Source: Lepidodermella squamata
Taxonomy: Eukaryota; Animalia; Gastrotricha
Direction of reading: 5' to 3'
DNA: 64,000 nt
NCBI GenBank assembly: GCA_047495785.1
Contig: JBLDXI010000009.1
Coordinates: 2,666,001-2,730,000, forward strand
Positions within the stretch are counted from its first letter, which is position 1. The number at the start of each line of letters is the position of its first letter. The notes beneath the pieces were generated by a model. The model did no database searches. It saw only the letters and a list, made by a program, of their open reading frames with translations, and was not told the origin of the DNA. Shown here one piece after another: positions 1,500-39,830 of the stretch. Made by a program: the position numbers and the translations under genes.

Positions 1500-3260
1500 T
1501 TAAGCTCCTCGACGCCAGTTCGGCTTTGGAGGCCCAGGCGGTGTCAAAGGAAGCAAGTAACAAAACACAAGAGCTAATAGAATCGAGCAGGTTATGTAGG
1601 TCATATCGAAAAAGTAGTCAATGACAGCCTGGAAAATCGTCCAGTGGTGGTGGCAAGGTTTCTTATGGTCGCACCTTCGGTCGACGGGAAACTCCTGACG
1701 CATCATTTTCAAGATCTTCTCAGCAACAGGTCCATGCATCAGAGGATAGAGCGACTTGAAGAATTTCTAATGAAAAGTAATTCAAATGTGAAACGTCGAC
1801 CTTATGTTCAGTCGAACTTGCCTGTTTCCTGTGAGCCATATCGGTAACGTAGACACAAGTTGCTTGTCCAAATATAGTGAAAACAATCAGCGTCTGATTT
1901 TAAGGATATATATTAATTAACAAAAGGGGCCGAAAATCAAACCATGTTCACGTTCAGGTAAATTTTGAAGAGCCTGGGGGAAACAATTTTTATGTGAAAT
2001 TCAACCTTAATAAGAAAATAGTCTCACGGCATATTGTCGGAACTCGGAGGCATGACAGCTTGGACAACATCCTGAATATACACAGTAATTCTCACTATAT
2101 CGATTCAAAAATCTCTTTCCTTACCTGGAACACTTGCAAGGCGAGGAAATTAGTCAGGGAAATGTCGATTTTAACGCCGTCGTGGGACTAGACAGATAGA
2201 CGCAGGATTACAAGAGATTTTAGAGGTAAAGGAACTTACCGGAAGAGGCAGAACTGTGAGTTCCAGCAGACTTATGACTAGGCAAGGAATAATAATGCTC
2301 AGAACGTAGTAAGAAGATTTTCTTTTGATTGATATAGTGAATTCGACCTAAATTGAAACATGTCAAGCGAAGGATTTACTTAATTTAGATCATCTCACGG
2401 CAGGGTAACACTGATCTTCTGTAGCTTCATAGCAGTCCATAAAGGTTGAGGCAGAGGTGTTTATCAAAGTCCACTGTTCGTTTCCTTTATAGTGAAGTGT
2501 TGAGAATTCGCCCGCAGTGAAAGTTTCCAAAGCTGCTCCATATTGCCAGCTTTGAGAAACAGAAAAATCAGTCTGCATTAGTTGAAATATAATTCCCATA
2601 CGTTTCGAAAATGAAGCTACAGTGTTGCACATCGTACGGGAACATTCTGTAAAGATATGTGGGATGAAAGCTGAATATAAGTGAATATCCATTTACTAAC
2701 GTTAGATCGTAGTCGCAGATCGAGGCAACTTGCTGCATCGGCCTGAATCTCACTATGCCGTCCTTGGAGACTTTCAGGAACTGCTTCCCCGCCCTGGTAA
2801 ATGCGTAGAAGTTGCCGCTACTGAAAGCCAAAAACAGCTGATCATATATTGTAAAAAATGCGCTATGATTACTTGACCAATGCTACATCCGGTATCCAGA
2901 CCTCATCACTAGTCATTGTCAAGTGTTCTGTCTCATTGAACTCAGTGTAATTCGACCATTGAAGGAAATCGTCGACCCATTCCATGTCTAATGTTGCGGT
3001 TACTACAAGCCTCCTGTATTTTTCAACCTTCGTGAAAAGAAAAATGATTCATATATTTTGGAAACAATTTGATAGCCTACCACATCATTGATTTCATGCA
3101 GCTCGATGCTTAATTTAACGTCCAAAGGCAAAGATCCATCCATTCGAGGTCTTCTTTTCGGAAGATAACCGTTGAGAATAACTCGTTCGATGTCAGCTTC
3201 AGAGTGACACAAACTTTCTCCAACAAACATTAAAAGCAACAAAACAAATAAGGTAATCAT
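1500..3260 (-). CDS. Cys-loop LGIC subunit G2 (class B)
   Basis: Multi-exon: YLPKRRP, WIPDVALVN, Cys-loop CDYDL..FPYDVQHC, SWQY, loop C DCYEATEDQCYPA, M2 KIDISLTNFLALQVFQD, pre-M4 CDHKKPCHHHW, ends WRRGA*. Includes one GC-AG intron. Confidence 0.9.
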
Positions 3261-3298
3261 TTTCTAAAATCGAAAAAAAGTTAGTCAACTAAATTTAT
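3261..3298 (-). promoter_or_regulatory. Putative intercistronic region: poly(A) signal plus unpaired 3' splice acceptor
   Basis: Minus strand reads TGA(ATAAA)tttagttgaCTAACtttttttcgattttTAGaaaATG. AATAAA overlaps the G3 stop, followed by a branch point, poly-Y tract and AG 3 nt before the G2 ATG. Confidence 0.55.
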
Positions 3299-5154
3299 TC
3301 AATTCGATCCATATTTTGCTATCCAATCGAAAGCAGGTGGCCTTAGCACCCGACCGGGTGTTCTCGGGGGTAAAATTACGAAAAATATAACCGGCGCTAC
3401 AGCAATGCAAACAGCGTAGAGTATAAAACCAGAGTGGTGATAGAATCTCCCCAATCGTGACCACAAAGCTCGGCGCCTTTTGATTTTCGGACTTTCTTGT
3501 TTCGGAGGCTTCTCGTCATAGAAAGGCCTATCTCGCAAAATGTTCATGCGGATGACTGAATTGTAGTTCGTCTCATCGAAATTGCCGTAGTTCTCATTCA
3601 TGTAATCGGCCAGGTTTGTTTCGTAGGGCTGATGCTCGAATCGAAGACGACCTGCGGCTCCAGCTTTCATCGCTCTCCAAATTGAGCCGAAAAACCACCG
3701 CATCCCGTCCAATACAGCCAGAGGTATCCAGAGAACGCGGTAGGTGAAACACGTCTGACTCGGCGGCCTCATTTTTAAACTCATTTCGTGGCAATACATT
3801 TCGAGGCCTTGACTTAGAATCGATTGGCTTATGAAAAGCATGTTCAGGTCGAGGTAAATGCTCAGTAGAGGGACGTGTTCCGAGGAAACCGGCAAGCTCT
3901 GACTTACGCTTGTCTAAAACTCAAGAATATACTTGGACTTGAGCTCACATATAGACAACTTACCAGAAAAAATGTATAGGCTGCTAACGAAGAATAAGAA
4001 ATTTCCATTTTGCCGACATCAGCCAGCTGAAAACGGGATTGCCATAGCAAGAATGATTGATTGAATCAAACTCAACTTACGGGTACAATGAAAGTCGCCA
4101 ACTGGATGACACTCAACAGAATTGAGGGGATGCAAATCGACACAAAGTGATACAAGCTTTTCCGAGACAGAAGGATTGTGTGCTTAATCTGGCAGAAAAA
4201 ATCACTTTTCGGAATATTCGTACAAATGAATTTGCGTACCGCAGAGTACTCGCGAGTGATCGAAGAATCAAAGATGTCAATTATCGATTCGTTGAAGACC
4301 TCAGTATGAGTTCTTATTATGTACCATTCAAAACTCTCTTCCAACCGGAGAAAATTGAGTGCTAACTCATGTGGATAAACATGGACCTGATCACTAGTGT
4401 AACCAGTCATTTGGAATGCGATAGAGCAGTTTTGCTCGTCAAACGGGTAATACGTTCCGTCAATGTCGCAAAACAATGAAACTGTCGACTCTGGATAGAA
4501 AACTATGTTCCCATCGCGGCCGACCGATATCATGAAGCCGTTAGGGTATATAAAAGCTGATTTCTCAGCACTGCGTGAAAGCATTATCACAGTTCAGATC
4601 GCGCATCAGCCTTAATGAACTTACGAATTAACAATCAGGAAGTTCGGTGTCCAAATCTCATCAGGAAAAACAGTTAATGTTTCGACGACATGATATGGGC
4701 ATATCCCCTCCCACTGTAGAAATTCGTCTTGCCAATAAATCGATGGAGACGCGATCGCGACCATCAAGCCATCAGCAGACTTTAAGGAAGTTGTCAGGTT
4801 TCAGAAAAATAATATAAGAAAGAGGCAAACCAGCTCTTCAATGGAGTAGAAGCTGAACTGGAATTTAATGTTCAAAGTTGAGCTGGCATCTTTCACAGGT
4901 CTTCGATATTTTGAGTAGTTGGCGAAAACGAGGTTTGTAACCTGAGTTTCCGATGCTGGTAATTTTCAAAGAGATTTAATCACTCATAAAATTAGCAATG
5001 AACACAAACCAATATCTGTGCAGTTGATTTCAGGTTCTTCAGGTTCCGGTTTCACTTCCGTGACAGGTGTGGTAGTTTCCGATTCCGCCCAAGAATCCCT
5101 GCTAAGGAAAATAGCAGCGAAAGATAGGCACAGCAACAAATGCTTCGCTGGCAT
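3299..5154 (-). CDS. Cys-loop LGIC subunit G3 (class C)
   Basis: MPAKHLLLCL signal peptide, NYSKYRRP, Cys-loop CDIDGTYYPFDEQNC, no loop B Trp, no loop C Cys, M2 KMEISYSSLAAYTFFL, tail VLRPPAF. Confidence 0.9.
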
Positions 5155-6989
5155 CTATAAAGCCAGGTTATTCTACATTTCTGCTCGAGACATCAATTTG
5201 GCAGAATTTATATAGCTTACAAAATGTCTCCTAGAGTAAGGTAAATATTATAAAGTGTAACGAATGCCTGGCATAGTGAGTTATTGCCTCTGGGCATAAT
5301 TAAGTGTCGACTCGGTAAAGTTCGCGATAAATCGACGAAAATGGATTCGGCGTGTGAATTGCGTGATTGTTTTCAGGAAAAAAATATGTTTCGCCTACAA
5401 GTCTCTCCCTCAGCCCTTTACTTTTTTCATCAAGTTGGCTCATCTCTCCTGGGGCACACACAAATAACTGCTGAATACCTAATTGCGGCGCTGGCTGCGG
5501 CAATCGAGGTCGCTAATTTCGGAAAATGGACCATATAAGCTAAGAATCGCTACTGGAACGGACAGTTTTTAAAGGGCTACGTCTATTTTAGCGAATATCG
5601 GGATGTCTGTAGTCGGCCTATATGAGAGTAGGTGTTTTCTGGATAACAGCCTACTCATTTTGGCCCATTATGGCTCGATATCTGCGATTGAAGCTTTCAT
5701 GAATTCCTCAAACCTCAGCGATCAATAATCGCTAGCTTCTAGGATATGTTTGCTCAACCGGGCACTTGAATCATGTGACGCGATAACAAACATTCATCAA
5801 ATTGTCTACTGATCTCAAAATTTGCACCAAACACGTGCATGAAGCAGCGAGCAAATTATGACTGTTTTTAGGCTGGAAGTGTTAGGAGAAAGTGGGACAT
5901 CTGAGTTCGAACATATGGCACTTGCGGCTTAATTTTGCTCAGTTATTTCCGATTTCTCAATACATGTAATTAGAATATTGAAGCGTGTTCGATATCAGGA
6001 TCATTATCCTCATCCTCATTTTCTGAGTTTTGACCTCAACATCTCCCACTTCATGGACATTTAATCTGAATCATTGGAATTTGAGTGTGAAGGTCTTCCT
6101 TTTGTCCCGTAATTCGGGATGACTGTGTCAGGGTTACCTTAGACACTTCTTAAAATTCCAAAACTTTCAAAAAATGCGCCAAATTCGTGCAAAGGTGAGA
6201 AATCGAAACTTGTTGATGTTCCACTTGCCAATTTTCAAGTCAAATTCCCACACTCACAGTGGCGTACAAATTCTTTTTTCGTGACTTTCTGGTAGCAATA
6301 GCATTGCAAACCATCCTTTCGGTAATTGAAGGCTTTCAGAAAGCTCAGCAAGTCGAGGAAATATAGAATATGATTTCACTAAAATGCGAAACGGTTAAGC
6401 TGGGTTAATCACACGGTCTCAAAAAGATTGTGAATCAATTATCTATCGAATGAGCTATGCATGCTCATGGTCGTCGCATGCATAGTTACTGCCGTGGACC
6501 CCTTGCAAACATATATGCAACACCCTGTATATTGTTTTTGGAACGCAATTTATTATGAAAGAAAGTGGAGAAATATAATTTTGAAAATAAATTCAGACAG
6601 ACAGCTTTCATTCTGGGAACAAAAATCGGCTGTAGGAACCTGAATTTCTGCGAAATTTGACAGAATTTTGTCCCCATTTGCAGCGTTTCGCGAGTCTCGG
6701 ATCGCGCAGTAGATCCTCGAACAGATTCGGTCGGCAAGTCGCCACCTAAGATATCAAGAACAGAAAGCACCGGAAACACTGCGCATGAAATCCAGGTAAT
6801 CGGACAGCATTTTGACCTCCGGGACATTGATCTTAGAATTTGACCCTCTTTCAGATTTCAGAAAATTCAATATGGGGTCAAATTTTCGGACTGACACGTC
6901 TACAAATGCTCTCCGCTTTCGGACAGGCTCGTCCGAAAAAGCCCTTAAGATTTTAAACTATTGCACGTTTCGTATCTTTGTTTGTCCAC

Positions 6990-9170
6990 CCCCAAGCTCT
7001 CTAAAGTCTAAAGGTCACTTGGCCTTGTTATATCTTTGAAAAAATACAGCCGACTTCACATTCACATTTTCACTCTGTAATAATAATACAAGAATGATCG
7101 GAGCAATTGTTGCTATTGTTGCGGCAAGTTTTGCCAGTTTTTTCTTATATCGCAAGTTTTACGCTCATCGATTCTTCAAATCATTGAGCATCCCCGGACC
7201 TGAACCGCACTGGCTTTTTGGAAACGCGCGCGAGCTATGGGGAAGTGAATCACGTCATTTGTTAATGCAGTCGTGGAGTAAGAAATACGGCCCGTTTTAT
7301 GGCTATTACATCGGTGCATCGCCTGTTCTTGTCGCAAGCAGTGCTGAAGGCGTGGAGCAGATCTGTGTCAAACAGTATGCTACTTTCCAAGGTCACAGAA
7401 TTTCACCAGTTCAGGTGAAAATAACAAAAATTAAAAAAAAAACAATTGGTTGTAATTTTCATTCAACTTTTCAGCCCTACCCGCCAGAGGATATGGATCG
7501 CAAGGTGTTCGCGCCTAATCTATTCTTTGCATGGGGCCAGCATTGGAAGCGGTTGAGGACCATTGTGAACCCTGTCTTTACGACAGGCAAATTGAAGAGT
7601 TACATGCCAGTGCTAGGGAAAAGCCAAAACGCCCTGTTGGAGGTGCTAGAGGAGAAGTGCAAAGCAGGCGATACTGTAAATATCCAAGATATCTTTAAAC
7701 ATTTGACAATGGTAGGGGATTCATTGCCTCGTGTTTTTGTAATACCAGTTTTTTTCAGGACGCAATTTCCGAAGTAGCATTTGGTGTTGAAGTGAACAGC
7801 CTGAAGACCAAAGATGAGGACAACGAGTTACTGCGGACCATCAGAAGCGTCAGCCAAGATTCCTTTGGTACCCCACTTATCATGAGAGTCGTAGACGTTT
7901 TTTCGGAAATTCGTCATTATTTCTCCAGGTTCGTGAAATCCTTACTGGAGGCGACGGAGATCGGCATGGGGCCTGTAGTAAGAATTAACAGCATGACTCA
8001 ATCTGTCATCAAGCAGAGAACGAGTAACCCGACTGTTAATCGTAGCGACCTGCTCCAATCTCTGATCGACGCATCCGAGTTGAACCCGGCCAATCAGAAT
8101 AGCGAAAGGCTGACTGAGAGTGAAGTCGCCTCCCAAAGTGCTGTCTTTTTTACTGCAGGGACCGGAACAACATCAACGGCTCTTGCCTTCATCTCCTACT
8201 TACTGTCGAAACATCAAGACGAACAGCAGAAAGTTTACGACGAAATCAACCGGGCAGTCGGGAAGAAGGAAGTGTTGGACTACGACGATGTGATGAGCCT
8301 TCCTTACTTGGAATGCGTTTGCAACGAAGCTCTGCGAATGTATCCCCTTGCTATTGGTGTTATGAATCGAAACGTTATGGAAGATACTCAGGTTTGCAGC
8401 GTCCCTGTGCCGAAGGGCACGTATCTTGTTCAAATGGACATGTATGCCTTGCATCACAATCCCGAGTATTGGGGCCCTGTTCCGCCATCAGAGTTCCACC
8501 CCGCGAGATTCAGCAAAGAATATGTTGAGAAGAATCCAAGGCCTAACGCAGCTTTCGTGCCGTTTGGCTATGGCCCTCGCATCTGTGTCGGAATGAGACT
8601 GGCCCAGGTGGAAATGAAGCTTACGCTGGCTAACGTCCTACGCCGTTACAAAATTGTTCCGAGCGAGTTTGCGGAATACAAACAAGGACTTCCCTTAAGA
8701 AGCAACGTTGGCATTGTCCCAGCAAATGGCGTCCTCGTCAAACTTATCCGTCGAGGATAGAAATAATTTAGAACATGGACGATAGAAAGAAGGAATGACC
8801 TATTATAAACTGTGAACTGAATTTGATTCCAATGTAGATTCTTCCTCTTTTTTCTTCAATTCACTGATTGTGGCGCTTATCAATGTTATGAAAATTAAAG
8901 ACAGAGCTGTGTTTTTTATTGAGGCTTTTGCAGACAAAAGGAAAATTGTCTGGACAGAATTTGGACCTTGTACTGAATAGATTAAAAACCTCATGGCTTT
9001 ATTGAGTACTGCCACAATTCATTGATAATACTACAGCGAACGCTTTTTGTAGAGCACACAATAATGTTTCCAGGGCCGGAAATAGCGATAAACTATCCTC
9101 GCAAGTAAAAAAAACAGTTTCAGTGCGACAAAGCTGCTGTCCTGCCTGGTTCCCGGTTTTGTGGTATACA
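6990..9170. repeat. Inverted segmental duplicate of about 48970-51150 (CYP gene, flanks, and the promoter of the next CYP)
   Basis: Coding sequence is near-identical to 49385-51050 in reverse complement. Non-coding flanks also match, e.g. aaagacag.gctgtgtt...ggcttttgcagacaa and cagtgcg.caaag.tg.tgtcctg. Boundaries are approximate. Confidence 0.85.
7094..8760 (+). CDS. Cytochrome P450 (CYP3-clan-like), 3 exons (7094-7414, 7475-7711, 7759-8760), about 519 aa
   Basis: N-terminal TM helix and IPGPEP hinge, WKRLR, I-helix AGTGTTST, EALR, PARF, heme motif FGYGPRICVG. Confidence 0.95.
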
Positions 9171-9613
9171 GGGTCGGACCTTAACTAATTTACAAGAAAA
9201 AAAACCAATCGGACGAGGTTACCACTTTGGTGACGTGTCAACTTGAGGTTCGGTTTTCGCTAAAAACGAATTATATTCGATCAAACAAGCTTCTCTAACC
9301 CTGGTCGGATTTTCTATTTCTTGGTATCATTAGATAGTTCAAGCGAAGCTCTACATGATAACCAATCCCAGTATTTGCTCAACCTGCTGAATTGCAGCTT
9401 GAAACTCACAAACGTGATAAAAATATTATAAAATGACCAGTTTTTAACCACACGGATGATATTTCATCAATTTCGGCTGGTTCCGCCTCGATTTCACTCG
9501 TTTCTTTTGTTTTACTCGATCTATATGTCGTGCTTCACTCAATTATCGATTTCTAAACGTCTTTTATTAATTGATCTGGAAGCTGGAGAAACGAAGCGGA
9601 ATCCGATCACCGA

Positions 9614-11394
9614 TCACACGCCTTTACGCCATTCTGTGTGCAATTCTTTTCTTGTAACAGGTAAAATGGCGAAAAAAGTAACGCAGGTCACGATGACAGC
9701 CACCACGTAGAAAATCAAAGTGATTCTATCAATAAAATCGGCTATGACTGCCCATCGATGGTGGCAGGCAGTGTTGCCAGAACATGCGGTGCCACTCGCA
9801 TCATCTTGCAGGAAATTAGTGGATCGACTGTCGATTTCGACGCATTCGTCTTCAACTGCCGTCTCGCCGACGCAAGAAATAGCAACATTATACGTTGATA
9901 TGGAAAGCCGTCCAGTCGGAAATTTCTGAAAGATAAGAGATGAGAATCAAAAAGTTAATCAAACTTTCCGAAGCTTACAACTCTGTTGCTTGACATGTTA
10001 TGCAAGTCTTGAGCGACGCCCTGAGAAAAAATTGCGACAGCTATGTAACTCATCTGGAGGTCCAGGTAAATGGTAAGGTATGGCAGGTGCTGTGATGAGT
10101 GGGGCATCAATTGGCTGAGATGGTCCTGGAACAATTGGAAAGCGACCAAAAGTGTGAGCGAAATTTCGAATCTGATGCCGTCTTCATACTGCGAAAATGA
10201 CAAATTTACCACCAATTAGCAAAATTCATGATTTTACCGGTAGCGTAAACGTGGTGATTTCGAGAACAGCGATGATGAGCGAGGGAACAAGTATTGAAAC
10301 AACGTAGTAAGAAGCTTTGCGGCGCAAAGTCATCTCGAAAGTTACCTTAGAAAAGAAAAATTGGAAAAAAATTCTGAAAGACTTTGTATTTTCATACCGC
10401 TGGGTAGCAGTAATCGGGCGATTCGTCATAGCAGTCCACAAATTGATCAATGGTCGTATTTATGAGAGACCACTGCTCACTGATTCGAAAGCCGGCAGTC
10501 GAGAAATTTCCTGGAATGAAAGTTTCCAGCAGCTTGCCGTATTGCCAGCTGTTCAAAAGAAGATGCTTATCAAATTGCAAATGGAATTTTTTACTTTCGA
10601 ACCTCTCAAATATCAGACCGCATCGCTGCATAAATGTTTATAAAATATTATTCATTCATTCATTAATACATACGTGCTCATCAAATGGAAAAAACCTGTG
10701 GGAATTAAGTTGGCAAAAATCACAAATCAAAATTATAAATATGAAAATTACCTGAGGTCAAACGCGCACAGGAAGGCGACCTGTCTCAATGGGGTGAAAC
10801 GAACCACGCCCGAACTGGACACCCTGACCAGTATTCTACGCGACCTTGTGAATTCGTACATATTCCCGCTGCTGCATAACCGCAGAAAGCTTACAAATGC
10901 CTTACAATGACAGCAAAGTTCTACTTTATGAGTGCAACATCTGGAAGCCAAATTTCGTCACTGTTGAAAACTAAGGAACGAGTTTCGTTGTACCCAGCGC
11001 TGTCATTCCATCGCAAGAAATCGTCGGTCCATGACATTTCTAAACGGCCGGTAATAATCACCTTGCGATTTTTTTCAACCTAGGGAAAACAGGCTTGATT
11101 TCCATTGCGGTGAATGGATTTATTAGAGTTAGGAATTACCACGTCATTTATGGCGTGAAGCACCAATCCCAGCTCAACTTCAACGGGTTGTCTAGCATCG
11201 CGACGGGGCCTCCGCTTTGGCATGTAGCCATCCATGAGCCAGGATGTCAGTTCCGTCTCAGAAAAGCCCTCAGTTTGCTCGGAATTGCTATCTGTCCCTG
11301 GTTTCACATCCGTTGGTTCGCAGTCAAACTTTGGGCAGGCGTAAATAAAAGGAACAATGAGGGCGAGACAGCCATGAAGGTTTAAATTCAGCAT
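9614..11394 (-). CDS. Cys-loop LGIC subunit G4 (class B)
   Basis: YMPKRRP, CAFDL..FPFDEH..C, SWQY, loop C DCYDESPDYCYPA, M2 RFEISLTLLVAFQLFQDH, CSGNTACHHRW, ends WRKGV*. Confidence 0.9.
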
Positions 11395-11510
11395 TTTACG
11401 AATTGTTTATTGGCAATTTAACAAAGCGAGTCCGATGAAACCCCACACTACGGTCGCCAAGCTACTAATATATGCGCTATTTTTAGCTTTTAAAATCGAT
11501 AGTCACACTT

Positions 11511-13225
11511 TCAAACACCCTTTCGCCACTCTTCGTGGTGTTCTTTTTTGGCGACAGGGAGAATGGCGAAAAACGTTACAGTTGTTATTGTCACGATGAC
11601 AGTGTAGAAAATCGATGTTGATCGATCGACGAGTTGTGCGACGGTCTCCCATCGATGGTGGCATTTAGGATGCCCCGAGCATGCTTTGCCCCGCCTCAGA
11701 GTTTCAATGAGCCGACGCGCTTGACTTGACTTGCGACGCACCAATTCAACCTTCGTTTTGATGCACTCGTCATGCTTAGCCGATGTTTTCGCGCCGCAGC
11801 ATACCGCAAGCATGTACATTGCACCAAAGAACGAGCTCACAGGATATGGCTGAAAAAGTCTGGAAATCCTTATCGATTAAAATGTGAGAAAATGCCTACA
11901 ATTCTGTTTTCTGATCTGTGCATTATCGCTTGGACCATGCCTTGGGTGAATATAGCGACTGAAATGTAAGCCATTTGCAGGTCAAGGTAAACGGCTAGAT
12001 AAGGCAGATGCTGAGAGAAGTGAGGCATTATCAAGCTGAGGTGATCTTGGAAAAGCTGGAATGCGACCAAAAGTGTGAGTGAAATTTCAAATCTGATGCT
12101 GTCATCGGGCTAAATTCGATCGGTAACCTTTAAAATGACCGTGAAATATCGATTAAAAACTCACTGGCAGTGAAAATGTTGTGATCTCCAAAACAGCAAT
12201 GACGAGAGATGGGATTAAAATTGCAATAACGTAATAAGCAGATTTCCGGCGAAGTGTCATCTCGAAGGATACCTAATAGAAATATTTTCAAAATCAAAAT
12301 CTAGCAGTATAAGAAAGTACCGCGGGGTAACAGAGATTCGGAGTGTTATCATAGCAATCCATAAAGGTTGTTGTTGCAATATCGATTAGAGACCACTGCT
12401 CGTCGATTTTGAACTTGTCAACGGAGAATTTTCCCGGGGTAAAAATCTCCAGAAGCTGCCCATACTGCCAACTTTTAAAATTGATTGAAATACACCGGAG
12501 TTATGATGAATGACTTACCTCTCAAAAATTGCACTGCACAACTGTCGAAAAAGAGATAATTAAAGGTGGAATAATTGCTGTGACAAAATTAACATGCTCG
12601 TCAAACGGAAAGAATCTCAAGTCGAATGCGCATGAGAATGAGACCTGTCTCGATGGGTTATAGTTGACTACTCCATTACTCGAAACCTTAACCAGCATTT
12701 TTCGGGAGCGAGTGAATTCGTAGAGACTTCCACTGCTAAAAGACAGCAAACTTGAAGTAACAGAGCGTAGCTAAAGGTTGAAATACTTTATCAGTGCTAC
12801 ATCAGGTATCCATATTTCGCTATTAGTGAAAACTAGGCTCTTGGTATCGTTGTAACCAAGCACTTGATCCCATTGCAAAAATTCATCGACCCAGGTTATA
12901 TCTAAACGACCAGTCACGACAACCTTCCGATTTCTCTCTATCTAAAACACAAATTGAGCCTGAGGGATGTTTCCCGAATCTTTCGTTTTACCACATCATT
13001 TATTGTGAACAGCTGAAAGCCAAGAGTCACGTCGACGGGTTTCAGAGCATTTCGGCGAGGTCTGCGCTTCGGCATGTAGTCTGTCAACAGCCATCTTGCC
13101 AGTTCAGTTTCAGAGTGATTTAGTGCAATCACCGAGTTTGATTGGGTTTGAGGATCGCATTCTTTACTCGGCTCTACTACCAGAAAATTGAACAAAAAAG
13201 ACAGGAAGCTTAGGGTGGTTAACAT
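11511..13225 (-). CDS. Cys-loop LGIC subunit G5 (class B)
   Basis: YMPKRRP, CAFDLRFFPFDEH, loop C DCYDNTPNLCYPA, M2 identical to G4, CSGHPKCHHRW, ends WRKGV*. Confidence 0.9.
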
Positions 13226-13368
13226 TTGTCATCAGTCAGTATTCAGAAATCGTAAAAGCTGAAGCTTAAGATCGATAATCATCATCACCAGGCAACTAAA
13301 AGGCTTTGTAGAAGACGCCGTTGAAACACATTTTAACCTTTTATTGTCACATACTTAACCACGTAAAT

Positions 13369-15274
13369 TCACGCTGCCTTTCTCCACTCATCATGAATAA
13401 CCGTTTTAGTGCGGGGGAAATATTCAAAAAACAGCCATGCGGTTATTGGAATGATCGCGATGTAAAATACACCGACAAGTCGGTCAAGGAGACGACCCAG
13501 TGTTATCCAATTGTGGTGGCAGTGAGTGTTTCCAGAGCACTTGCGTAGCTTCACTTCTTTTTTCTTGTTTTCTTCATGTTCCGACGCTTCGTCGTGGTTC
13601 GCACCGGAAAACTTGCCCGTTTCCGGGTTAAATAGGAACATGTCAGGGCGTATAGTTGATTTCATTGGCTCGGCAGTAGTTCGGCGGCATTCAGTTTTAA
13701 CGTCAGGCTGTATGCCGAGTACTCTAGATGTCGTCAACATCAGGGTACCAAGCGCACTACTTCCAGGATATCGCTGTATTTGAACAAATTTCAAACCCTT
13801 GAACAAGCCATTTTCAAGTCCTCTTACCTCCTGATTGCTTGATTTCTGAGAGATTGCTTGGGATAGACCTTGGAAGATTAATGCAGCGCCAATGTATACC
13901 TGTCAAAAATTAACGTCAAATCTACAATTTCATCATGAGATTGGGCGAACCATTTGAAGGTCGATATAGATGGTTAGGTAAGGTAAATTATCGGACGCAT
14001 GCGGCATGATTTGGCTGATCGTGTCTTGAAAGAACTGATATCCCAAAATCAGCGTTATTGAGATATCCACCTTGATGCTGTCAACAGACTGCGTTCAAAG
14101 GGAGTAACATTGGAAAGTTCGAAAGATTCTCAAACGCACCGGAAGGGCGAAGGTTGCTATTTCAAGAATCGTCATTATTAGGGCCGGGATCAAAATCGAC
14201 ACTATATAATATGATGCTTTCCGTTTGATGTTCATCTTGAAATAGACCTGTGAAGAAATTTGATTAAGGTGAACAATTCTTGAATTTCTCTGTTACCGCT
14301 TGCCAACACCAATCCGGGGTGTCTCCGTAGCAATCGATGAAGGTTTCTGCAACAGCATCCATCAGCGTCCACTGCTCGCTGATCTTGAAGTTGTCGACCG
14401 TCATGTTACCAGGAGCCAGGTATTGCTGCTTCGGGCCATACTGCCAGCTGCGGAGGATTGGAAATTGGCACATAAGGAAAAGCTACCTTACTTACCTCTC
14501 AAACACCAGGCCACATTGCTAAGGATTTTATAGGTTAATTCAATCATAACATTTACGCAGTAAATTGGCTTACGTGTTGGTCGAATGGAAAGAACCTTAT
14601 TTAAGCACAGCGGTAATTAGACAGTAATTATCGATATTAATTGTTACCTTAAATCGAAGGCGCATATGAATGCAACCTGTCTGGATGGCGTGTAGGTCAC
14701 TAGTCCATCTTTCCTAACTTTCAGCTTCATCTTTCTGGATCTTGTAAATTCGTACATGTTGCCACTACTGCTTGTGAAAGCCGTCAGAGAGTTCAATAAG
14801 CAATTTAGCCTCGGAAATATACTTTATAAGCGCCAAGTCAGGGATCCAGATTTCATCGGTATTAAACACTAGAAACTCAGTTGCATTGTACGGGGCGAGA
14901 CTGTTCCATTTCATAAAATCGTCAGTCCATACAGCGATCAATTTTCCAGTTACAACGACTTTCCGAACTTTTTCTATCTGTAAAAATGAATAAATTGAGA
15001 CAGAAAATATCAATCAGAATGCTTACGATGTCATTTATTGCGTAGAGCTCAAATCCTAGATTCACGTGTACTCCTTCGATGGCATTATACCTCGGTCGTC
15101 TGCCGGGATGATAGCCACTTAGCAATTTACTCGCCAACTCTGCTTCGGAGTAGTCTACAACAACAAAAAGAAACATGTCACAACAATCTATCGAGCTAGT
15201 CCACTCTTACTTGGATGATTTTTAGTATTCACAGAACCAGAGCAAAAGCAAATCAGTAAAATGAGTGAAAGCAT
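13369..15274 (-). CDS. Cys-loop LGIC subunit G6 (class B)
   Basis: MLSLILLICFCSG first exon, YHPGRRP, loop C DCYGDTPDWCWQA, M2 KVDISITLILGYQFFQD, CSGNTHCHHNW, ends WRKAA*. Confidence 0.9.
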
Positions 15275-15335
15275 CTAATAAACCAGAAATAATAATAGTC
15301 TTTAGTTGAAGCAATTTTTTGGAAACATCATCTTC

Positions 15336-17019
15336 TCATATTGTGGAATTAGATGAGTTGCTAAGGTTCATGTTTGTCATTTTAAAGGCAGGTGGCCGTG
15401 TTATGATCCCGTCGGTTCTAGTCGGAAGGTATCCGAACAGAATAGCAGGCGTAGCAGCAATGGCGAGCATGTAAATGATCAACCCAGCCCGTTGAACGAC
15501 CGAGCCGAACCTAAGCCAGTTTCGAGCTGCTATGCGCGACAGGCGCCGGCGCTCCTCGTTTGAGCCGTCGTAGATTGTGCCAAATAGCTCCAACATCCTT
15601 GCCTCCCGATCTTCTTCGTTCGAATCGGCCGAAACTGACGGAGCAGCACTGTTACGCTTTCTCAGGCCCAGATCGCGCTTATTGAAGCCTCGTAGCATTA
15701 GCAAACTTCTGATTATTTTATTGAGAATTGTGATTCCAGATTTTTCGATGGTTTTCGCCTTCTCGTGGCAATAGATAGCGACAGCTTGACAGGCAAGACC
15801 AAATACGATGTAGAAAGTTTGAATGTTCAGGTAATAGCAGAGCATAGGTATCCGCTCAGATGAGACTGGCATTTCCATGTTTACTGTTGCTTGGAAAGTT
15901 GTGTAGGCCAACATGCAAGTAACCGTAATCTCCAACTTCCCAGCGTCATTGTCCTGAAAAAAGCGGAAATTACAGTAAAACTGATTTCCAATGAGCGAAG
16001 ACTGTTAACCGGAATGATGAAGCTCACAATTCCTGTTACAGCAATGATTAATGACGGGACAATTATTGTAACCATAGGATAGACGCCCTTCCGCCTGATA
16101 AGGAAGAAGAACTCCATCTGGAAATTGAAAGTTTGCCGATATGTATTTTCATTCAAATTGTTATCAAACCCCCGAATAACATGAGTTGGCAGGTGAAAAG
16201 ATGACGCATTCATTGTAAAGCCGAACATCAGCCGCAATCACAGCCCATTGCTCATTATCCTCGAGCCGGTAGAAGTTGTAAGGCGGGTCGACAGCGGACA
16301 GCACAACTTGATTAACAGTGTCGCCGCTCATGAGGAAATTCATGCTGCAGTTTTGCTCGTCAAAGGGGAAGTAAGTCGGGTCCATGTTGCAAAACATAGC
16401 CACAGTTGCTTCCGGATTGAAGGCCATTGAGCCATCGGAGGAGAGGAGCATCATGAACCCTTGCGGGTCTATCATCACCACCTTATTATCTCTGAAAAAA
16501 CCCAGTAAATAAGCCGATAATTAGTTGGGAAAATGTTACGAGTTTATTAGAAGCAAATTCGGAATCCAGACTTCGTCAGGGAAAATTGCCATGATTGAAA
16601 TGGATTCATTGTAAATAGCAAGGTCATTCCAAGCCAGATACTCGTCTTTCCAAGTTATTGTCGGTGATGTCGTGGTTACAAATTGCGATGTTTTGATGTC
16701 GGCTTCATCGACCGCATAGACACTGAGTTGAATTTGGATTCCAATAGGCTTCGTCGCGTCCTTGATTGGCCTCCGCCGCTTCGAGTAGTTCGCAAATATA
16801 ATCCGCGACAGATCGGTTTCTGATACTGCGTTGAATAATGAAGTTCAAGGCTCAGAATCCTAATAACTTGAGAAACTTGCCTACTGGAGTCTTTGTGTCA
16901 ACAGTTTTTGACTCTTCAATCGGATAGGAAAGATTGGTGTTATTCTGTTCGAAGATGGAATCATTTGCCGATACAGGATTGGTTAAAAGAGCTTGCGCCA
17001 TTAAGATAATCTGTAACAT
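15336..17019 (-). CDS. Cys-loop LGIC subunit G7 (class C)
   Basis: MLQIILMAQALL, NYSKRRRP, Cys-loop CNMDPTYFPFDEQNC, loop C ECVIFSPANSCYSG, M2 KLEITVTCMLAYTTFQ, tail ITRPPAF. First intron is GC-AG. Confidence 0.9.
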
Positions 17020-17203
17020 TATTCCAACCTAAAAGACAAGTTTCGAATTATTATAGATTTACTTGAATTTGAATACAAATACACCAGGACCTGCCTAGCA
17101 CAGTCATACAGAATTTGGAATAATTCAAACCGGGTTTGCGAGAATTGATTGACATGCATTGATAGAGCTTAGCACTAAAGCCGAGTTATTCGATAGTCAA
17201 AGT

Positions 17204-19481
17204 TTAGCGAGGCTTGGAGAACATAGCTGGTAAGATGGAGAATATGACGATAGGCGTGATGGATATGCACATTATATAAATTATCAGAGTCATCCTTTCT
17301 ACAACGTCAGCAGTGAACAACCAGTCATGGCGATTGCGTTGAAGGCCAAGTTTAGCCGCTGAAATGAAGCTGGACTGGTGGCGAGCTCGGTGTTCCTGGG
17401 AATCTGGACCGCCAACGTACGGCACGGTCACCACCAAATGGGCGGAAACCTTTGACAGCGCCCCTGGGTTAACGTGGTGTTTACCTTTAACTCCCATAGA
17501 TTCTTCCTCCTCCATGGTCATTTCTTCGAGATCTGCGTGCTCCGAGCTTACGAACAGGCATTTTGCTACAACTTCGATGAGTGCCCTGAAAGCGCTCGGC
17601 ACGGGTCGCATGTTTTCGGCCTTACCTAAAGCCCAACAAATTTAGTTGAAGCTGCTATATACAGAATCGCTCTGGCTTACCAAGACAAATGAAGACCAGA
17701 GCTTCACCAAGAAGGGCGATGCCGATAAACCCCATTTGCAGATCGATATACTACAAATTTGAGAAGAAAAGTTCATTAAGCAAGATATCCTTGTACGAAC
17801 GCGTCGCGACTGAAGATACGAATCCGCAAAATTAAGGCCCTTTCAATTTTCATTCTTCCCTTCACTTTTTCAGTGACCATGTATTCGTTAGATAATTTTA
17901 GGCCAAACGTATTGAAATCATTGACTTCTATTCATATCAGTTGTTCGCGAAAATTTTGAAAAATCATCCATGCTTTATAAGCAAAGAATGTAGAACGGAG
18001 ATTTGTTTACTTAGTGTGGCCTCTGCGCTTCGCAATTACGGTAATAATAGAGGACCGAGAGATTCGAAAATTGGCATTGATTGATTGATGGGCTTTAATT
18101 TTACTGGAGCGGTAGATTATTTTCAACATCATCCTTTTCGACTTACAATCGACATGAGCGGTGTGTGTTCACTAGTTCGCGGCATGTCAGCGTTGATTGT
18201 GGTCTGAGATAAATATTAGCACAGGATATTTAAGTGATCGATTTCCAATTGTCCGCATTGACTCACCTGAAATACAGCATACGCGAGCAGGCAAGTGAAG
18301 GAGATGTGAACTTTCATGACCTCAGCAGTCGGTAGGGCGAAAATCACGATTTCGACAATGGCAATGATCAAACTCGGAATAATAATATTAACATTCTGAA
18401 AACCATCAAATTATACGAATAAAAATTCATTAAAACGGGAAACTAACATAGTAAGCAGCTTTCCGTTTGAAATTTATCACAAATTCAACCTTTTGAGAAA
18501 AGAAATTATGAAAAACTAAGAATGAGGTCATTTTTTACCCCGGGTTGGCAAGCTGCCAAGGTTACATGCGAGCAGTTCGGAGTATCTTTGAAGCCCGCAG
18601 CGCCCAAAACTTCCCAATGCTCGTTGACTTTTAGATTCGCTAAATTGACAGATGATTCGCCGATTTCCAGCGTTTGCTGATTTTCCTCGTACGTCCATGC
18701 TTCAAATCTCAGCTCGCAAGATTGATAGTCGAAACTAGGTAATAAAATTTCAGTCAAAAAAATCAGCGCGTAAACATGCCGAATAAGACCCACGGGAAAA
18801 ATGTCAAATCAACTTCGCAGAATGACGTGATTGTTGCCATGGGCAGATAGCTGACTTGGCCGTTGCTTTTCACTTGAGCCAGTATCCCCTCCGCCATCAT
18901 TAACGCATACATATCGCCGCTGTTGACAAGAGCAACATCAGGCACCCAAATCTCGTCACGTTCAACGGTCAGGCTGGTTATGCCTGAGAAGCGATCAGAG
19001 GCATTCCAAACCAGAAACTCGTCATGCCATAGCTAGACAAAGGAAATCAACAACTATTTTCAGCTTTCAGCTTTCAGCCTACCACTTGTAGAGCGCACGT
19101 TGTCCTCATTTCGTGATCCCTCTCAATCTAAAAAAGGTTAATTAAGGGTGTGACATCATAAAACTAGATTGCTCTCACAATTTCATTGATGTTGTAAACA
19201 ATGAGACTTATAGTGACATTGACCGCTTCTTGAGCTCGTTTCCGAGGCCGCCGATTTGGGGAATACGACGTGAATAATACTTCTTCTAGATCTTTCTCCG
19301 ATATGAACTCCTCCTCCCCTTCAGTTGTCCCATTTTTAGGGAGCGTAGCGTTTGTTGGTTCGATAAAGTCTGGCAGGGTACTGTTGGTAAAGCTAATCTC
19401 GGCCCCGTCCAATAACGAGCTGATTAATGGAAGACTAATCGCAGAAAATGACACGAGAAGCGGAACAGCGGAAGTTAACAT
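17204..19481 (-). CDS. Cys-loop LGIC subunit G8 (class A)
   Basis: YSPNRRP, IWVPDVALVNSG, CEVDLTFFP.FDYQSC, FEAWTY, loop C NCSHVTLAACQPG, M2 KVHISFTCLLAYAVFQ, M4 WLFTADVVER. Confidence 0.9.
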
Positions 19482-19778
19482 ATTGAAAAGTCTCAGAAAA
19501 CGCTATAAATGAATGTTGTCGCCAAAAAAAAAACAAGTTACGTGATAAAAATCGATGATTACCCATGAGTGCTCCTACTCAATTGCTAGGCAATGAACAG
19601 CGATTCATCGTCGCTATTTTTTTCATATAGGGAAATGACTATATACCAAATTTTATTTTTATTCGAAAGGCATGAAAAATTAACGCATGCTTTTAGATCG
19701 CATTTAAAATAGGATTTTCGATTAAATAAACCCATGTGACACTTGAAAATCATATGGTGGCGATTTCCAGGCTTTGTT

Positions 19779-21706
19779 TCAAACGCCTCGCCGCCACTCG
19801 GGATGAATTTGACTGGTGGTAGCTGGCAGAATGACAAATAGCGTCAAGACCGTTGCTAGCACGGCGGTAACGTAGAATGAATTAACGCATCGATTGGTCA
19901 CATCCGCCAGCGTCAACCAGTTATGGTGACATCGGAAATTTCCAGAACAAATTCGATGCGATTGCTCCACTTTAGGACGTTTCCGGTGATGATGCGGCTG
20001 AAACTTCGATTTTAGTGCCGTTGTGAAAAAATACATCGAATGGCCATTTTTGTCGATTTTCATCGTAACTGAGGGCAGAGTTATCGGGATTGGATCAGGC
20101 TTTGTGCTGCATTTGTCTCGGAGAACAGGCAATTCGATACCCAATAATTTCGAGGTCAATCTCAAAAATCGCAACATCCTTTCGGATAACAGAAAAATCT
20201 GAAATTCAATAAAAAATTGATGATAGGAACAATTCGATTTTGAGTGATTCTGAACCTTTCGACGATGAGCTTTACAAGTGAAATATTGAGCAAATGCCTG
20301 GCCAAACAGAGTTATCCCGATATATGCCTAAAATTAGTATTAAGCACAATAAATAAATAAATCTAGCGAAATGTCACCATTTGAAGGTCGATGTAGATGG
20401 TCAAGTAAGGCATGTACTGAGTTGTTCGAGGCATAATCATACTGATCGAATCTTGAAAAATTTGGTAGGCCAGCAAAATCGTGACAGATATTTCAACTTT
20501 CACGCTATCGTGGGACTTAAATTTCAATATTAATCTCTAATTTGTTTACAGAATTTCGCGAGTTCTTACCGGAAGCGGAAAAGTGACCATCTCCAACATG
20601 GTTATTATCAAGGAAGGAATCAGCACTGAAGTTACGTAGAAAGATGGCTTCCTTCTTAGTCTCATTCGAAAATGGACCTAAATCGTTCAATAATCAAGGC
20701 AATCAAGAGGAATGGAATCATTATTACGGCTGGGTAGCATAGGTCAGGTGTATCGTCGTAGCAATCGATGAAAGTTGATGTCGAGACATTTACCAGGGTC
20801 CATTGTTCGCTTGGGTTGTAGTCATCGACAACGAACCGACCTGCAGTGAACGTTTCCAGCTTAGCCCCATACTGCCAGCTACGAAAATCGATGTAAAAAT
20901 GAGCGTAAATGAGGTAAAATAAAACGAAATAAACAAACCTCTCAAAAATCAATCCACACTCCTTAAAAAAACATGAATAAATAGCGACGGCACTTAAAAA
21001 GGAGAAGCGCTTACGTGTTCGTCGAAAGGAAACAACCTGGGTGAAAAGACGATTTTTTTCAAATCTAATCCCAAAACTTGTCTCAAACCTTAAATCAAAG
21101 GCGCATGTAAACGATACGGTTTTAGATGGTTCGTAAATTACCAATCCATTTTTACGAACCCTAAGATTCAGGTTTCTTGACCGCGTGAAGGCGTACATAT
21201 TCCCACTACTGGATAATTTAGCGGAAAATTTATAATTAATCAAGGGATATTGTATCAAAGTTACTTGATTAAAGCTACGTCTGGCAGCCAGACCTCATCG
21301 GTATGAAAAACCAGAAAATCCTTCGAGCTGAATTCAGTCGAATTTTCCCAGATTAAAAAATCGTCTCGCCACTCCATTCGCAAGCATCCAGTAACAACGA
21401 CCTTTCGCATTCTTTCAATCTATTCGGTAAGAATTAAAATTGAAAATTAATTTAAAAAATCTCGAAATCGCTAACCACATCGTTGAGTTCGAACAGATGA
21501 AAGCTGAGTGCTACGTTGACTGGTTCGATTGCATCTAATCGAGGCCGTCGAAACGGCATATAATCAGCGAGTAATGAACTCGCCAGGTCAAATTCTAAAA
21601 TTATATAAAATTATTTCGAATTTTCGAAGGAACAACAATTACCTGAGAAATTTTCGGCTCGAACATTAATCGCTATTATAGCTAAGATGGCTAAAGTAAA
21701 AGCCAT
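19779..21706 (-). CDS. Cys-loop LGIC subunit G9 (class B)
   Basis: MAFTLAILAII, YMPFRRP, CAFDL, SWQY, loop C DCYDDTPDLCYPA, M2 KVEISVTILLAYQIFQD, CSGNFRCHHNW, ends WRRGV*. Confidence 0.9.
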
Positions 21707-21749
21707 GCTAAATACAATTAGATTTGATTAAATTTTCAAATGCATGATT

Positions 21750-23467
21750 TTATGTCGCTTTTCCATCTAACTGATACGCCGCTGGTCTTGTGATTAAACC
21801 AGGCGATACCGGAATATTTGACAAGTAAGCAATGGGTGTGATAATTATCAAGATCAAGTAAGAAATCCATCCTAATCTATCAATAATCACAGATAGTTTC
21901 CGCCATGTATATCTATGTTTTTGATCAGATTTCTTTGTCGATTGGAAGTCAAAAGCTGAAGGGTATGCAGTTCGTATCCGTATCTCCTTTGAAACGCAAA
22001 GACCTGAGTCGTAACGAGCTGGATCGTATTTTCCATACTGTTCCGGGAAATTCGCCTGGTTTATTGCTGTTTGAGGTTGCTTTCTGTACTTGGCAATGAA
22101 ATCTTCGAAAATTACTCGAGCATTTATGTGAGGAATTCGGGGTTTCCTAAACTGGAGAAAAGAACTCATTAAACGCAGATAGGTGTTGAAAGTTGGTACT
22201 TGAGAGTTGGTTTCAGACTTTTTTAAGCAAAATATCGCCAATCCTTGGCAAGTGAAAGCCCAAGCTACGTAAGCCGCTTGAAGGTTGATATATCCGCAAA
22301 TTAAAGGAACGCGATCTGATCGAGGCGTCTCGTAACGATTTATTGACGCTTGGAAAATCGTATGGGCCAAGAGACACGTCACAGTTATTCGAGTTTTGAC
22401 AACATCGTCTCGCTTAAAAAATCAATCAAAATACCTCACGAGAGATTAATTGACCGGGAAAACATACCGGTATGACGAAAGTCGCTAGAACAATAACAGA
22501 CAGGATGATAGATGGGATGATAAGAGATACCATGGTATAACCAAATTTTCTCCGGATTAATATGGAAAACTCGATCTATTAAGACAAATTATTATTTATT
22601 TAATTTTTTTTTCTAAATTTTACCCCTGAGTAGCATTTTACGCCCGAAATCTCAGTCGTGCAGTCGTTGAAAAGTTGGTGATGAGCAGCTTTCAGAGTCC
22701 ATTCTTCACTTTCCTCTAGTCGATAGAAATTCCAAACAGGATCGTACTCAACAATGACTAATTTCTCGACTTCGTCGCCGTATGCCACGAAAATCCAACT
22801 GCAGTTTTGCTCATCGAATGGGAAATAGGTGGGGTCCATATCGCAGTGGGTCGCGACATTCGCCTCTGGGTAGTACTGGGTATTTCCATCAGAAAGAAGG
22901 GAAAGCAAGAATCCTTCAGGCCTCAGTAACTCGGTTTTCTCCTCTCTGAAACAGCTATATATAAAATCAATTAATTTTCACTACAAAGACTCACGAGTTG
23001 AAAAGTAGGATATTAGGAATCCAAATTTCTTGCGGGAAAACCGTCAAAACTGGGACAGACTCGTTGTAGAGCAAATTATCGCTCCATTGAAGGTATTCAT
23101 CCTGCCAGTAAAGGGCTGGGGATGCTAGAGTTAACATCTCATTCCGCCTTATTTCCTTCGTAATTTAATCATTTTTATAAGTTGGGTCAAATATTTATGA
23201 GCTAATCTTACAGCTTCTTCAATGCCGAAAATGCTCAATTGAAACTTGACGATTACAGGCTTTGAAGCGTCTCGGACAGGTCGGCGGTGCTTTGAATAGT
23301 TTTTGAAGATGGATCGAGTTAGATCCTGCTCCGATATCGTACCTTTCGTACCTTTTTTCAGGCCAAAATAAGTTGAAAGATTGATTCAAAGACTTCCTAC
23401 CTCTTTCAGCTAAGTAGAGCGTGAAATTACATATAAGGGTAATTAGTACCAGATTTGATCTTTCCAT
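21750..23467 (-). CDS. Cys-loop LGIC subunit G10 (class C)
   Basis: NYSKHRRP, Cys-loop CDMDPTYFPFDEQNC, loop C DCTTEISGVKCYSG, M2 KTRITVTCLLAHTIFQ, tail ITRPAAY. Confidence 0.9.
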
Positions 23468-23703
23468 TAACGCAATAAAATATCAGGGACATTTTATTAT
23501 GACGAATAAAATTATCGAGATTGTAGAATTCTCGGCAGTTCGATTTTCTCCTGTCTAAATTGCCCTCGAAGGAAATGAATTTTTCAAGAAAAAACGCACG
23601 CAATGTTATCGTTTGATAATTTTTTATTTGACCGAAACGGATGAGACAGAAACAACGCCGACTATAAAAAAACATTGATATATCCATAATTAGAAGGCCA
23701 TAA

Positions 23704-28329: not shown

Positions 28330-28604
28330 CTCAGTTAAATCTTAGCCTTAGCCTTGAAACTCTATTAATAGCTCAATTAAAATGTAGAATAGGAGGAAGT
28401 AAAAAATTGTCGATGGCGGCTCATAGGAACGTACTAATTAAACACCATTCGATTTTTTCCGATGCCGCAAGGGAAAATGATGTTCCTAAAACACACCCTG
28501 TAGCGCATTTGTCAGTTAATTGACGCAAAAAAACACACACCGTTTTTTATTTTAACAAGACACAAATAGCCCACAGCACATAATTAGAAAAACTGCGCAA
28601 AAAA

Positions 28605-30964: not shown

Positions 30965-31114
30965 AAATCAGGAATTGATTAATTAGGTCACGCGTCAAAA
31001 AAATGGGGTCCAGTGTGCCCACCTCCTCGAGCCTCTGGCTATTTGAGTTAATTACACATCGTACTTAAATCAACTCAACAAATTTATTTATTTCCAATCA
31101 ATATTACAAAAAAT

Positions 31115-33040: not shown

Positions 33041-33174
33041 TTCCGAATTATTTCAGGATTATTCATTTAATCCATCAAGGATAAAGCGAATGATTAGCCG
33101 GAGGCATTTTCATCATGTTTGCCAATTATCTTAAATAAATAGCGAAATAATAATCGATTTGTCTGACACAGAAG

Positions 33175-35000: not shown

Positions 35001-35075
35001 TTTGAACTAAAGATTCTCAAATCCTGTTTTACTGAAAATTGTTCTAACTTTTTATTTTTTTTTTATTACCTCAGG

Positions 35076-37185: not shown

Positions 37186-37376
37186 AAACGATTTACTCTT
37201 TTCGAACGAACAGAATCAAGCCGGTATTTTCTGTGGCTCTTGAAATTATTTCATCTTCGCTATGTCCTGGAAATAATCGTCCTCGATCGATTTCAGCTAA
37301 TTGCAGTGTCTGGGAAAACGAACCGGATCAAATCAAGTGCCACCATCAATTAGCCACTTTATTGCCTCAATTTATA

Positions 37377-39615: not shown

Positions 39616-39830
39616 TTTAGCGTTTCAAAGCAAATATAATTATAACACTAGGTACAGTGATTGAGGAAATGTTCATGCTTTTTCCTTGTTTTTGTTTGAT
39701 TTGGCAAGTATCGCAAGGATCGATAAGTCCATTATAGCCACTTGAAGCCGTGATCCATTAGCAATTAGCTGAATTTATTCTATTTTAAACTCAATCAAAA
39801 GCAATGTAAAAAAATGTGAAGATTTGGACA

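Follow-up and report, generated by a model that had tools for sequence, protein, structure and literature searches.

The window analysed here is a 64,000-nucleotide (nt) stretch of the genome of the gastrotrich Lepidodermella squamata (contig JBLDXI010000009.1, positions 2,666,001 to 2,730,000 of the forward strand; the coordinates given below are those of the window). On its minus strand, genes for Cys-loop receptor subunits, with introns of 44–60 nt, form a long array in which a gene of one type, C, is followed three times at very short distance by a gene of another type, B. The G+C content of the window is about 42%, that of the published L. squamata genome 43%; the genome paper is silent on trans-splicing and operons (PMC11660948). 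Read along the minus strand, the genes stand in the order G11 (A), G10 (C), G9 (B); G8 (A), G7 (C), G6 (B); G5 (B), G4 (B); a cytochrome P450 gene on the other strand; and finally G3 (C), G2 (B), G1 (A). This order was derived from open reading frames and from spliced models, the latter approximate: they keep some introns in frame, RNA joints mismatch them unless forced, and they were used solely for clade assignment, rough identities and splice-site matrices. The RNA evidence consists of contigs of two runs, X1 and X2, on 6,000 letters of the window (11300–17299), a stretch picked for its X1 word share (0.24, versus 0.07 for another stretch); such contigs show neither RNA ends nor expression levels.

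By Pfam domains and by their translations, the array genes are assigned to the subunits of Cys-loop (pentameric) ligand-gated ion channels, a family with a C-x13-C loop in the ectodomain and a four-helix membrane domain. The Pfam domain Neur_chan_LBD (PF02931) was detected on a G3 exon (4072–4590, E 6.8e-13) and on a G7 exon (E 1e-12), and more weakly on an A-type exon (E 2.9e-5, 24 bits, below the 26-bit cut-off); Neur_chan_memb (PF02932) matched the last exon of G7 below its cut-off of 28.1 bits (E 3.7e-5, 24.5 bits). The Pfam scan gave no match on any B-type exon, and the B genes are placed in the family by 24–35% protein identity to the A and C genes and by motifs in their translations. 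The motif CDIDGTYYPFDEQNC and the M1–M4 stretches are recognisable in translations from the array. Protein word searches, which covered proteins of 0.55–1.75 times the query length, came back blank for the last exon of G7 and for the ligand-binding exon of G3. Each of the three B reading frames (G2, G6 and G9) starts by encoding hydrophobic residues that resemble a signal peptide, and the N-terminal helix typical of the ligand-binding domain comes next, so that an upstream coding exon would not be needed. After these A, B and C genes, the same strand carries seven further Cys-loop subunit genes of two more types (H1–H7, 26073–41971), separated, where the gaps are measurable, by 75 to about 290 nt; the vicinal Cys pair that marks alpha-type subunits (DCCY) is present in several of them but absent from types A, B and C.

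The stop codon of the C gene is separated from the ATG of the B gene by 38 nt (G3–G2), 61 nt (G7–G6) and 43 nt (G10–G9), all on the minus strand, and every one of these spacers contains a branch-point-like motif, a T-rich tract and an AG that lies 0–3 nt ahead of the ATG (Table 1). In the G3–G2 spacer, an AATAAA that overlaps the stop codon (3299–3294) is followed by CTAAC (3284–3280), a run of seven T (3279–3273), an AG (3265–3264), the letters AAA and then the ATG. The original prediction had described this anatomy, the closing of the G7–G6 spacer in AG–ATG, the AG–C–ATG end of the G10–G9 spacer and the recurrence of the same arrangement in all three C–B pairs; the minus-strand sequence bears it out on each of these points. 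The three C-to-B gaps are also the three shortest of the 15 same-strand gaps of the array, the remainder measuring 75–464 nt. By rank, the chance that the three shortest gaps all fall on C-to-B junctions is 1/455, a figure which, like the other chance figures given below, overstates the independence of the three junctions, since these share ancestry.

Table 1. Coordinates of the C-to-B spacers, of the genes that flank them and of the neighbouring A-to-C gap (X1 is one of the two RNA runs)
Feature	Position	Strand	Remarks
Spacer 1, G3–G2	3261..3298	-	38 nt; reads ATAAATTTAGTTGACTAACTTTTTTTCGATTTTAGAAA
Spacer 2, G7–G6	15275..15335	-	61 nt; ends ...GGTTTATTAG; ACTAAA 15306–15301; AG 15276–15275 abutting the ATG
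Spacer 3, G10–G9	21707..21749	-	43 nt; ends CTAATTGTATTTAG-C; CATAAA 21754–21749 overlapping the stop; CTAAT 21721–21717; AG 21709–21708
G3, predicted C-type Cys-loop receptor subunit	3299..5154	-	ATG 5154, stop TGA 3301–3299; open reading frames and approximate spliced model
G2, predicted B-type subunit	1500..3260	-	ATG 3260, stop 1502–1500; open reading frames and approximate model; signal-peptide-like start MITLFVLLLLMFVG
G7, predicted C-type subunit	15336..17019	-	ATG 17019, stop TGA 15338–15336; Pfam on exons; X1 contigs across exons
G6, predicted B-type subunit	13369..15274	-	ATG 15274, stop 13371–13369; expressed and spliced in X1
G10, predicted C-type subunit	21750..23467	-	probable ATG 23467 (start by sequence reading), stop TAA 21752–21750; open reading frames and approximate model
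G9, predicted B-type subunit	19779..21706	-	ATG 21706, stop 19781–19779; open reading frames and approximate model; signal-peptide-like start MAFTLAILAIIAINVRA
G8, predicted A-type subunit	17204..19481	-	directly upstream of G7; approximate model; X1 contigs from last exon through stop
G8–G7 (A-to-C) gap	17020..17203	-	184 nt; AGTAAA 17063–17058; AG 17030–17029, 9 nt before the G7 ATG, 7.0 bits

A candidate 3'-end signal of the upstream gene precedes the acceptor at all three junctions, and is weak in spacer 2. While an AATAAA overlaps the stop codon of G3 and a CATAAA that of G10, G7 has a weak ACTAAA only, 29 nt past its stop; most other genes of the array have a canonical AATAAA 8–121 nt past the stop. 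In spacers 1 and 3, cleavage is predicted to occur 15–30 nt past the stop, that is, at the start of the T-tract of the acceptor.

The strength of the terminal AGs as splice acceptors was evaluated with acceptor and donor matrices derived from 37 well-behaved local cis introns (44–60 nt). These AGs score 10.5 (G2), 7.8 (G6) and 8.8 bits (G9), compared with a leave-one-out median of 6.3 bits for the introns themselves, which puts all three between the 97th and the 99.7th percentile of AGs overall. Across the window, 13 out of 2194 ATGs (0.6%) have an acceptor scoring 7.8 bits or more 0–3 nt upstream. The spacers contain four GTs, which score from -5.1 to 2.6 bits; three of them lie 8–26 nt from the AG, too near to serve it, and the fourth, at 52 nt, is the one that scores -5.1 bits. 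The local donors (n = 37) have a median of 7.6 bits, the weakest scoring 1.6. In the interval 35–130 nt upstream of the acceptor, donor scores do not exceed 0 bits at G6 or 2.2 bits at G9.

It could be argued that these acceptor-like ends are inert: the B genes would have minimal promoters at the end of the C genes, with the A/T-rich hexamers at the stop acting as TATA-like elements, and the T-tract and AG would merely reflect local composition. The genome is indeed very compact, as seen from the other gaps of the array, and an A(A/C)TAAA hexamer is present 27–48 nt ahead of each B ATG. Against this, strong acceptors at 0–3 nt in three cases out of three are very unlikely to arise by chance given the background of 0.6% per ATG, and the branch-point-like CTAAC and CTAAT elements are correctly distanced. 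Furthermore, a second haplotype of spacer 2 found in X2 keeps the AG and has a longer T-tract, with about 10 of the 61 spacer positions changed. We consider it quite improbable that the acceptors are inert.

The pairs are old. In a maximum-likelihood tree, the A, B and C genes form three clades (support 98/99, 100/99 and 100/99), with branch lengths of about one change per site, and the branching order of the C genes, (G3,(G7,G10)), is compatible with the weakly supported order of the B genes, (G2,(G9,(G6,...))). The C copies are merely 31–36% identical at the protein level, which implies that the spacing has been retained over a long time; their B partners are 36–41% identical. The C–B pairs thus seem to stem from ancient duplications of a block, in which a very short spacer with an acceptor at its end was retained.

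Both G7 and G6 are expressed and cis-spliced in one RNA sample, X1. Five GT..AG joints of G6 were observed in X1 contigs (introns 13827–13774, 14139–14089, 14296–14248, 14822–14768 and 15026–14978), with zero depth inside the G6 introns at the reported positions; these minus-strand joints and empty introns indicate that X1 is RNA of L. squamata or of a very close strain. X1 contigs fall in most bins of G6, of G7 and of the 3' end of G8, whereas G5, located 143 nt downstream of G6, is nearly bare. Around the G7–G6 junction, they cover 15320–15325, i.e. 11–16 nt beyond the G7 stop, and not 15240–15301. Two X1 contig ends, at 15229 and 17047, abut a SMART-type primer by its 5' end, an orientation unlike that of a normal cDNA end, and many joints in X1 contigs connect opposite strands; given the primer orientation and the inverted-strand joints, both ends are taken as library artefacts and not as RNA termini.

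Two further differences between the contigs and the window were noted in this region. The second haplotype in X2, which was seen at 15223–15357 at about half depth, carries about 14 substitutions and small indels in 135 nt of the first exon of G6 and of spacer 2, and hence reveals a very high local heterozygosity. Within G6, contigs of X1 and X2 alike depart from the window at both edges of a 35-nt segment (13949–13983), and the unmatched letters beyond 13983 are identical in the two runs; the cause is a difference either between haplotypes or in the local assembly of the window.

The best reading of the C-to-B pairs, which we hold with moderate confidence, is that they are operons resolved by spliced-leader trans-splicing. 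RNA polymerase would continue past the C gene and transcribe the B gene as well, so that each pair would form one transcription unit; the C message would be cleaved and polyadenylated in the 38–61 nt spacer, with the A(A/C)TAAA hexamer, which lies across the stop or after it, as a guide; and a spliced leader would be trans-spliced to the orphan acceptor located 0–3 nt before the B ATG, thereby providing nearly the entire 5' untranslated region (UTR) of the B message. The likely gain would be that the expression of two subunits belonging to the same heteromeric Cys-loop channel is matched. We favor this reading because the acceptors are complete and donorless, because a polyadenylation signal lies at the stop, because the gaps cannot accommodate a promoter in addition to a UTR, and because the arrangement has been conserved for long; it is from this anatomy that we infer a polycistronic precursor, a leader on the B messages and the co-assembly of the two subunits. 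The receptor-subunit operons of the original prediction are partly supported: what can be read in the DNA (the acceptor, the donors absent at two of the three junctions, the hexamer and the old spacing) fits them, whereas the X1 contigs provide neither a leader nor a bridging RNA.

Several observations weigh against the operon reading. First, the G3–G2 junction has a donor-like site, TTC|GTAATTTT (GT 3379–3378, minus strand), which scores 8.5 bits and lies 116 nt upstream of the acceptor. The acceptors had been predicted to be unpaired at all three junctions; G6 and G9 indeed lack a usable donor in the 130 nt upstream, and for G2 the prediction is qualified by this strong candidate. The candidate donor sits in the M4 coding sequence of G3, and a 116-nt intron would be unusually long beside the local ones. 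Second, comparable acceptors close to the ATG occur in G3, G8, G7 and H4, together with donor-like sites of 3.7–6.6 bits 56–66 nt upstream; since these acceptors can be paired with cis donors, an acceptor near the ATG is not by itself a mark of trans-splicing in this genome. Short 5' UTR introns closing at the ATG indeed seem, on the basis of these predicted sites, to be common here, and the peculiarity of the B genes is the absent donor, not the acceptor. Third, the gaps of the array form a continuum from 38 to 464 nt, so that compactness alone is no mark of an operon. Fourth, no X1 contig bridges 15240–15301 at spacer 2, which is a weak test as precursors are rare and the run, of 118 million letters, is small. 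Fifth, the X1 contigs of G6 do not extend beyond 15229, which leaves the first 45 nt of the coding sequence uncovered; they halt beside the library adaptor, with no leader-like loose end. Sixth, the ACTAAA of spacer 2 is lost in the X2 haplotype. Lastly, no spliced-leader RNA gene was found in the window: Rfam at gathering threshold gave no hit, and small multicopy elements are absent, every repeat found being a paralogous coding exon.

The first two of these observations bear on the possibility that each B gene has a small promoter of its own in the last exon of the C gene, from which a short non-coding exon would be cis-spliced to the acceptor, the C stop and the spacer then being part of a 5' UTR intron. 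The donor–acceptor pairs that end just before the ATG in G3 (66 nt), G8 (60 nt) and H4 (63 nt) would provide a local precedent, and the 8.5-bit donor makes the fit clearest for G3–G2. The fit is poor for G6 and G9, given their lack of donors at 35–130 nt: the next candidate donors would demand introns of 183–381 nt in place of the local 44–60 nt. Moreover, no TATAAA, TATATA or TATAAT is present in the 12 coding bases, stop and spacer that were scanned, nor was any seen in about 100 further bases of the C-gene ends that were read. We therefore regard an internal promoter, the main rival of the operon reading, as unlikely, if most conceivable at G3–G2.

The same 3379 donor would, if used, fuse G3 to G2 in frame, which raises the question of whether C and B are joined into a two-subunit protein, a natural concatemer, by cis-splicing out the C stop. 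Reading frames allow such a join at one of the three junctions, as the sole candidate donors of G7–G6 (365 and 381 nt upstream) and the G10–G9 candidate are out of frame. In addition, M4 would be shortened and would run into the signal peptide of the B subunit, resulting in a wrong membrane topology. A concatemer is hardly credible on these grounds, and C–B fusion as a general explanation was rejected on reading frames. Read-through of the C stop was likewise rejected, the B ATG not being reached in frame at any of the three junctions.

Note that a fourth tight gap, of 75 nt, occurs in a different subfamily, between H5 and H4 (35001–35075, minus strand). A donor GAG|GTAATAAA (6.4 bits) lies 6 nt past the H5 stop, and an acceptor of 4.4 bits is found 63 nt further on, leaving 6 nt to the ATG of H4. 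With two AATAAA in it, the spacer resembles an ordinary intron; it could belong to a spliced two-gene message or be an operon junction.

Acceptors at or near the ATG are found in C genes as well as in B genes (at 0 nt in G3, 9 nt in G7 and 0–3 nt in G2, G6 and G9), as would be the case if the two genes shared a promoter and an upstream non-coding exon that cis-splicing connects to the C acceptor in one message and, over the full length of the C gene, to the B acceptor in the other; the G3 donor located 66 nt upstream could serve both. The cholinergic locus provides a model for such an arrangement: the VAChT gene lies inside the first ChAT intron (unc-17/cha-1), and a shared exon is alternatively spliced in cis over a long intron. 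The likeness lies in two functionally linked genes on the same strand, with acceptors just before each coding region. Unlike at the cholinergic locus, however, splicing of a shared exon would here require introns of about 1.9 kilobases (kb) where all 37 well-behaved ones measure 44–60 nt, and the RNA contigs run unspliced through the sole candidate donor of G7, at 17084. A shared exon is accordingly very improbable.

The operon reading may be extended upstream. In its extended form, the unit would be a three-gene cassette, A–C–B, with a single promoter, its three products making up all the subunits of one heteromeric channel, and it would have been block-copied at least three times (G11–G10–G9, G8–G7–G6, and G3–G2 with A lost or displaced), in a phylum without published spliced-leader trans-splicing. 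This extension is tentative and, in our view, doubtful. The hints in its favor are the G8 RNA near the G7 acceptor, the coverage of the 3' end of G8, of G7 and of G6 next to a bare G5, and the compatible trees of the C and B genes. X1 contigs are unspliced and continuous over 17047–17278, with no depth at the listed positions in 16969–17036; the G8 contigs thereby reach 17047, i.e. 12 nt past the AGTAAA and 17 nt short of the G7 acceptor. At the head of the unit, a TATATA is located about 164 nt ahead of the G8 ATG, and the G8 acceptor is preceded at 60 nt by a weak donor (3.7 bits); both would be consistent with G8 having its own promoter. The G11–G10 gap counts against the cassette, as it is 236 nt long and contains no good acceptor. 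As for the start of G10 itself (23468–23703, minus strand), no good acceptor lies within 60 nt of the likely ATG at 23467, upstream of which another ATG, out of frame, is present at 23491; with these features, G11–G10 is no mirror of G8–G7.

The closest known case is the des-2/deg-3 operon of Caenorhabditis elegans (Treinin et al. 1998, as cited in PMC2662886), in which nicotinic-type Cys-loop subunit genes are co-transcribed and their products form one channel; in the Haemonchus homologue, according to the same source, the downstream message bears a spliced leader. Both there and here, two subunit genes stand head to tail on one strand. The C–B pairs differ from des-2/deg-3 in that the spacers are of 38–61 nt, in that there are three old paralogous pairs, in that the host is a gastrotrich with very divergent orphan subunits, and in that co-transcription is here predicted from the sequence. 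With regard to spacing, the operons of tunicates (Ciona, Oikopleura) are defined by intercistronic cut-offs of 60–100 base pairs, and in these as well as in the rare SL1-type operons of C. elegans there is often almost nothing between the polyadenylation site and the trans-splice acceptor (PMC7986045). The junctions described here resemble them in having a polyadenylation-like hexamer at the stop and an acceptor tract 15–30 nt later. In tunicates, the leader and the operons were demonstrated by RNA data, whereas in L. squamata both would follow from the anatomy of the junctions. A full-text literature search combining gastrotrich and spliced leader retrieved no relevant paper.

Besides the receptor genes, the window contains CYP3-like cytochrome P450 genes at 7094–8760 (plus strand) and at 47236–48954, 49385–51050 and 51747–52406 (minus strand). 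The copy at 49385–51050 is closely similar to that at 7094–8760, and the closest database relative of the exon 7792–8757 is just 44% identical to it. A retrotransposon of the long interspersed nuclear element (LINE) type lies at 54772–58893 (minus strand) and is apparently intact: a first, Gag-like frame of 286 residues with a zinc knuckle precedes a second frame of 1063 residues with endonuclease and reverse-transcriptase motifs. Nothing recognisable as a leader-gene target site or remnant was found in the flanks of this LINE (54.7–59.2 kb).

The mechanism of operons resolved by trans-splicing is itself well known, and the gain would in that respect be incremental. If the operon reading is correct, L. 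squamata would have operons that hold partner receptor subunits together, an arrangement for which the sole precedent cited is in nematodes, and the pairing would have outlasted duplications so old that the copies share about one third of their residues. This would provide an additional test case for operon function, in Gastrotricha. It would also be natural evidence that the C and B subunits act together, and would thereby designate candidate partners for the laboratory expression of these orphan channels.

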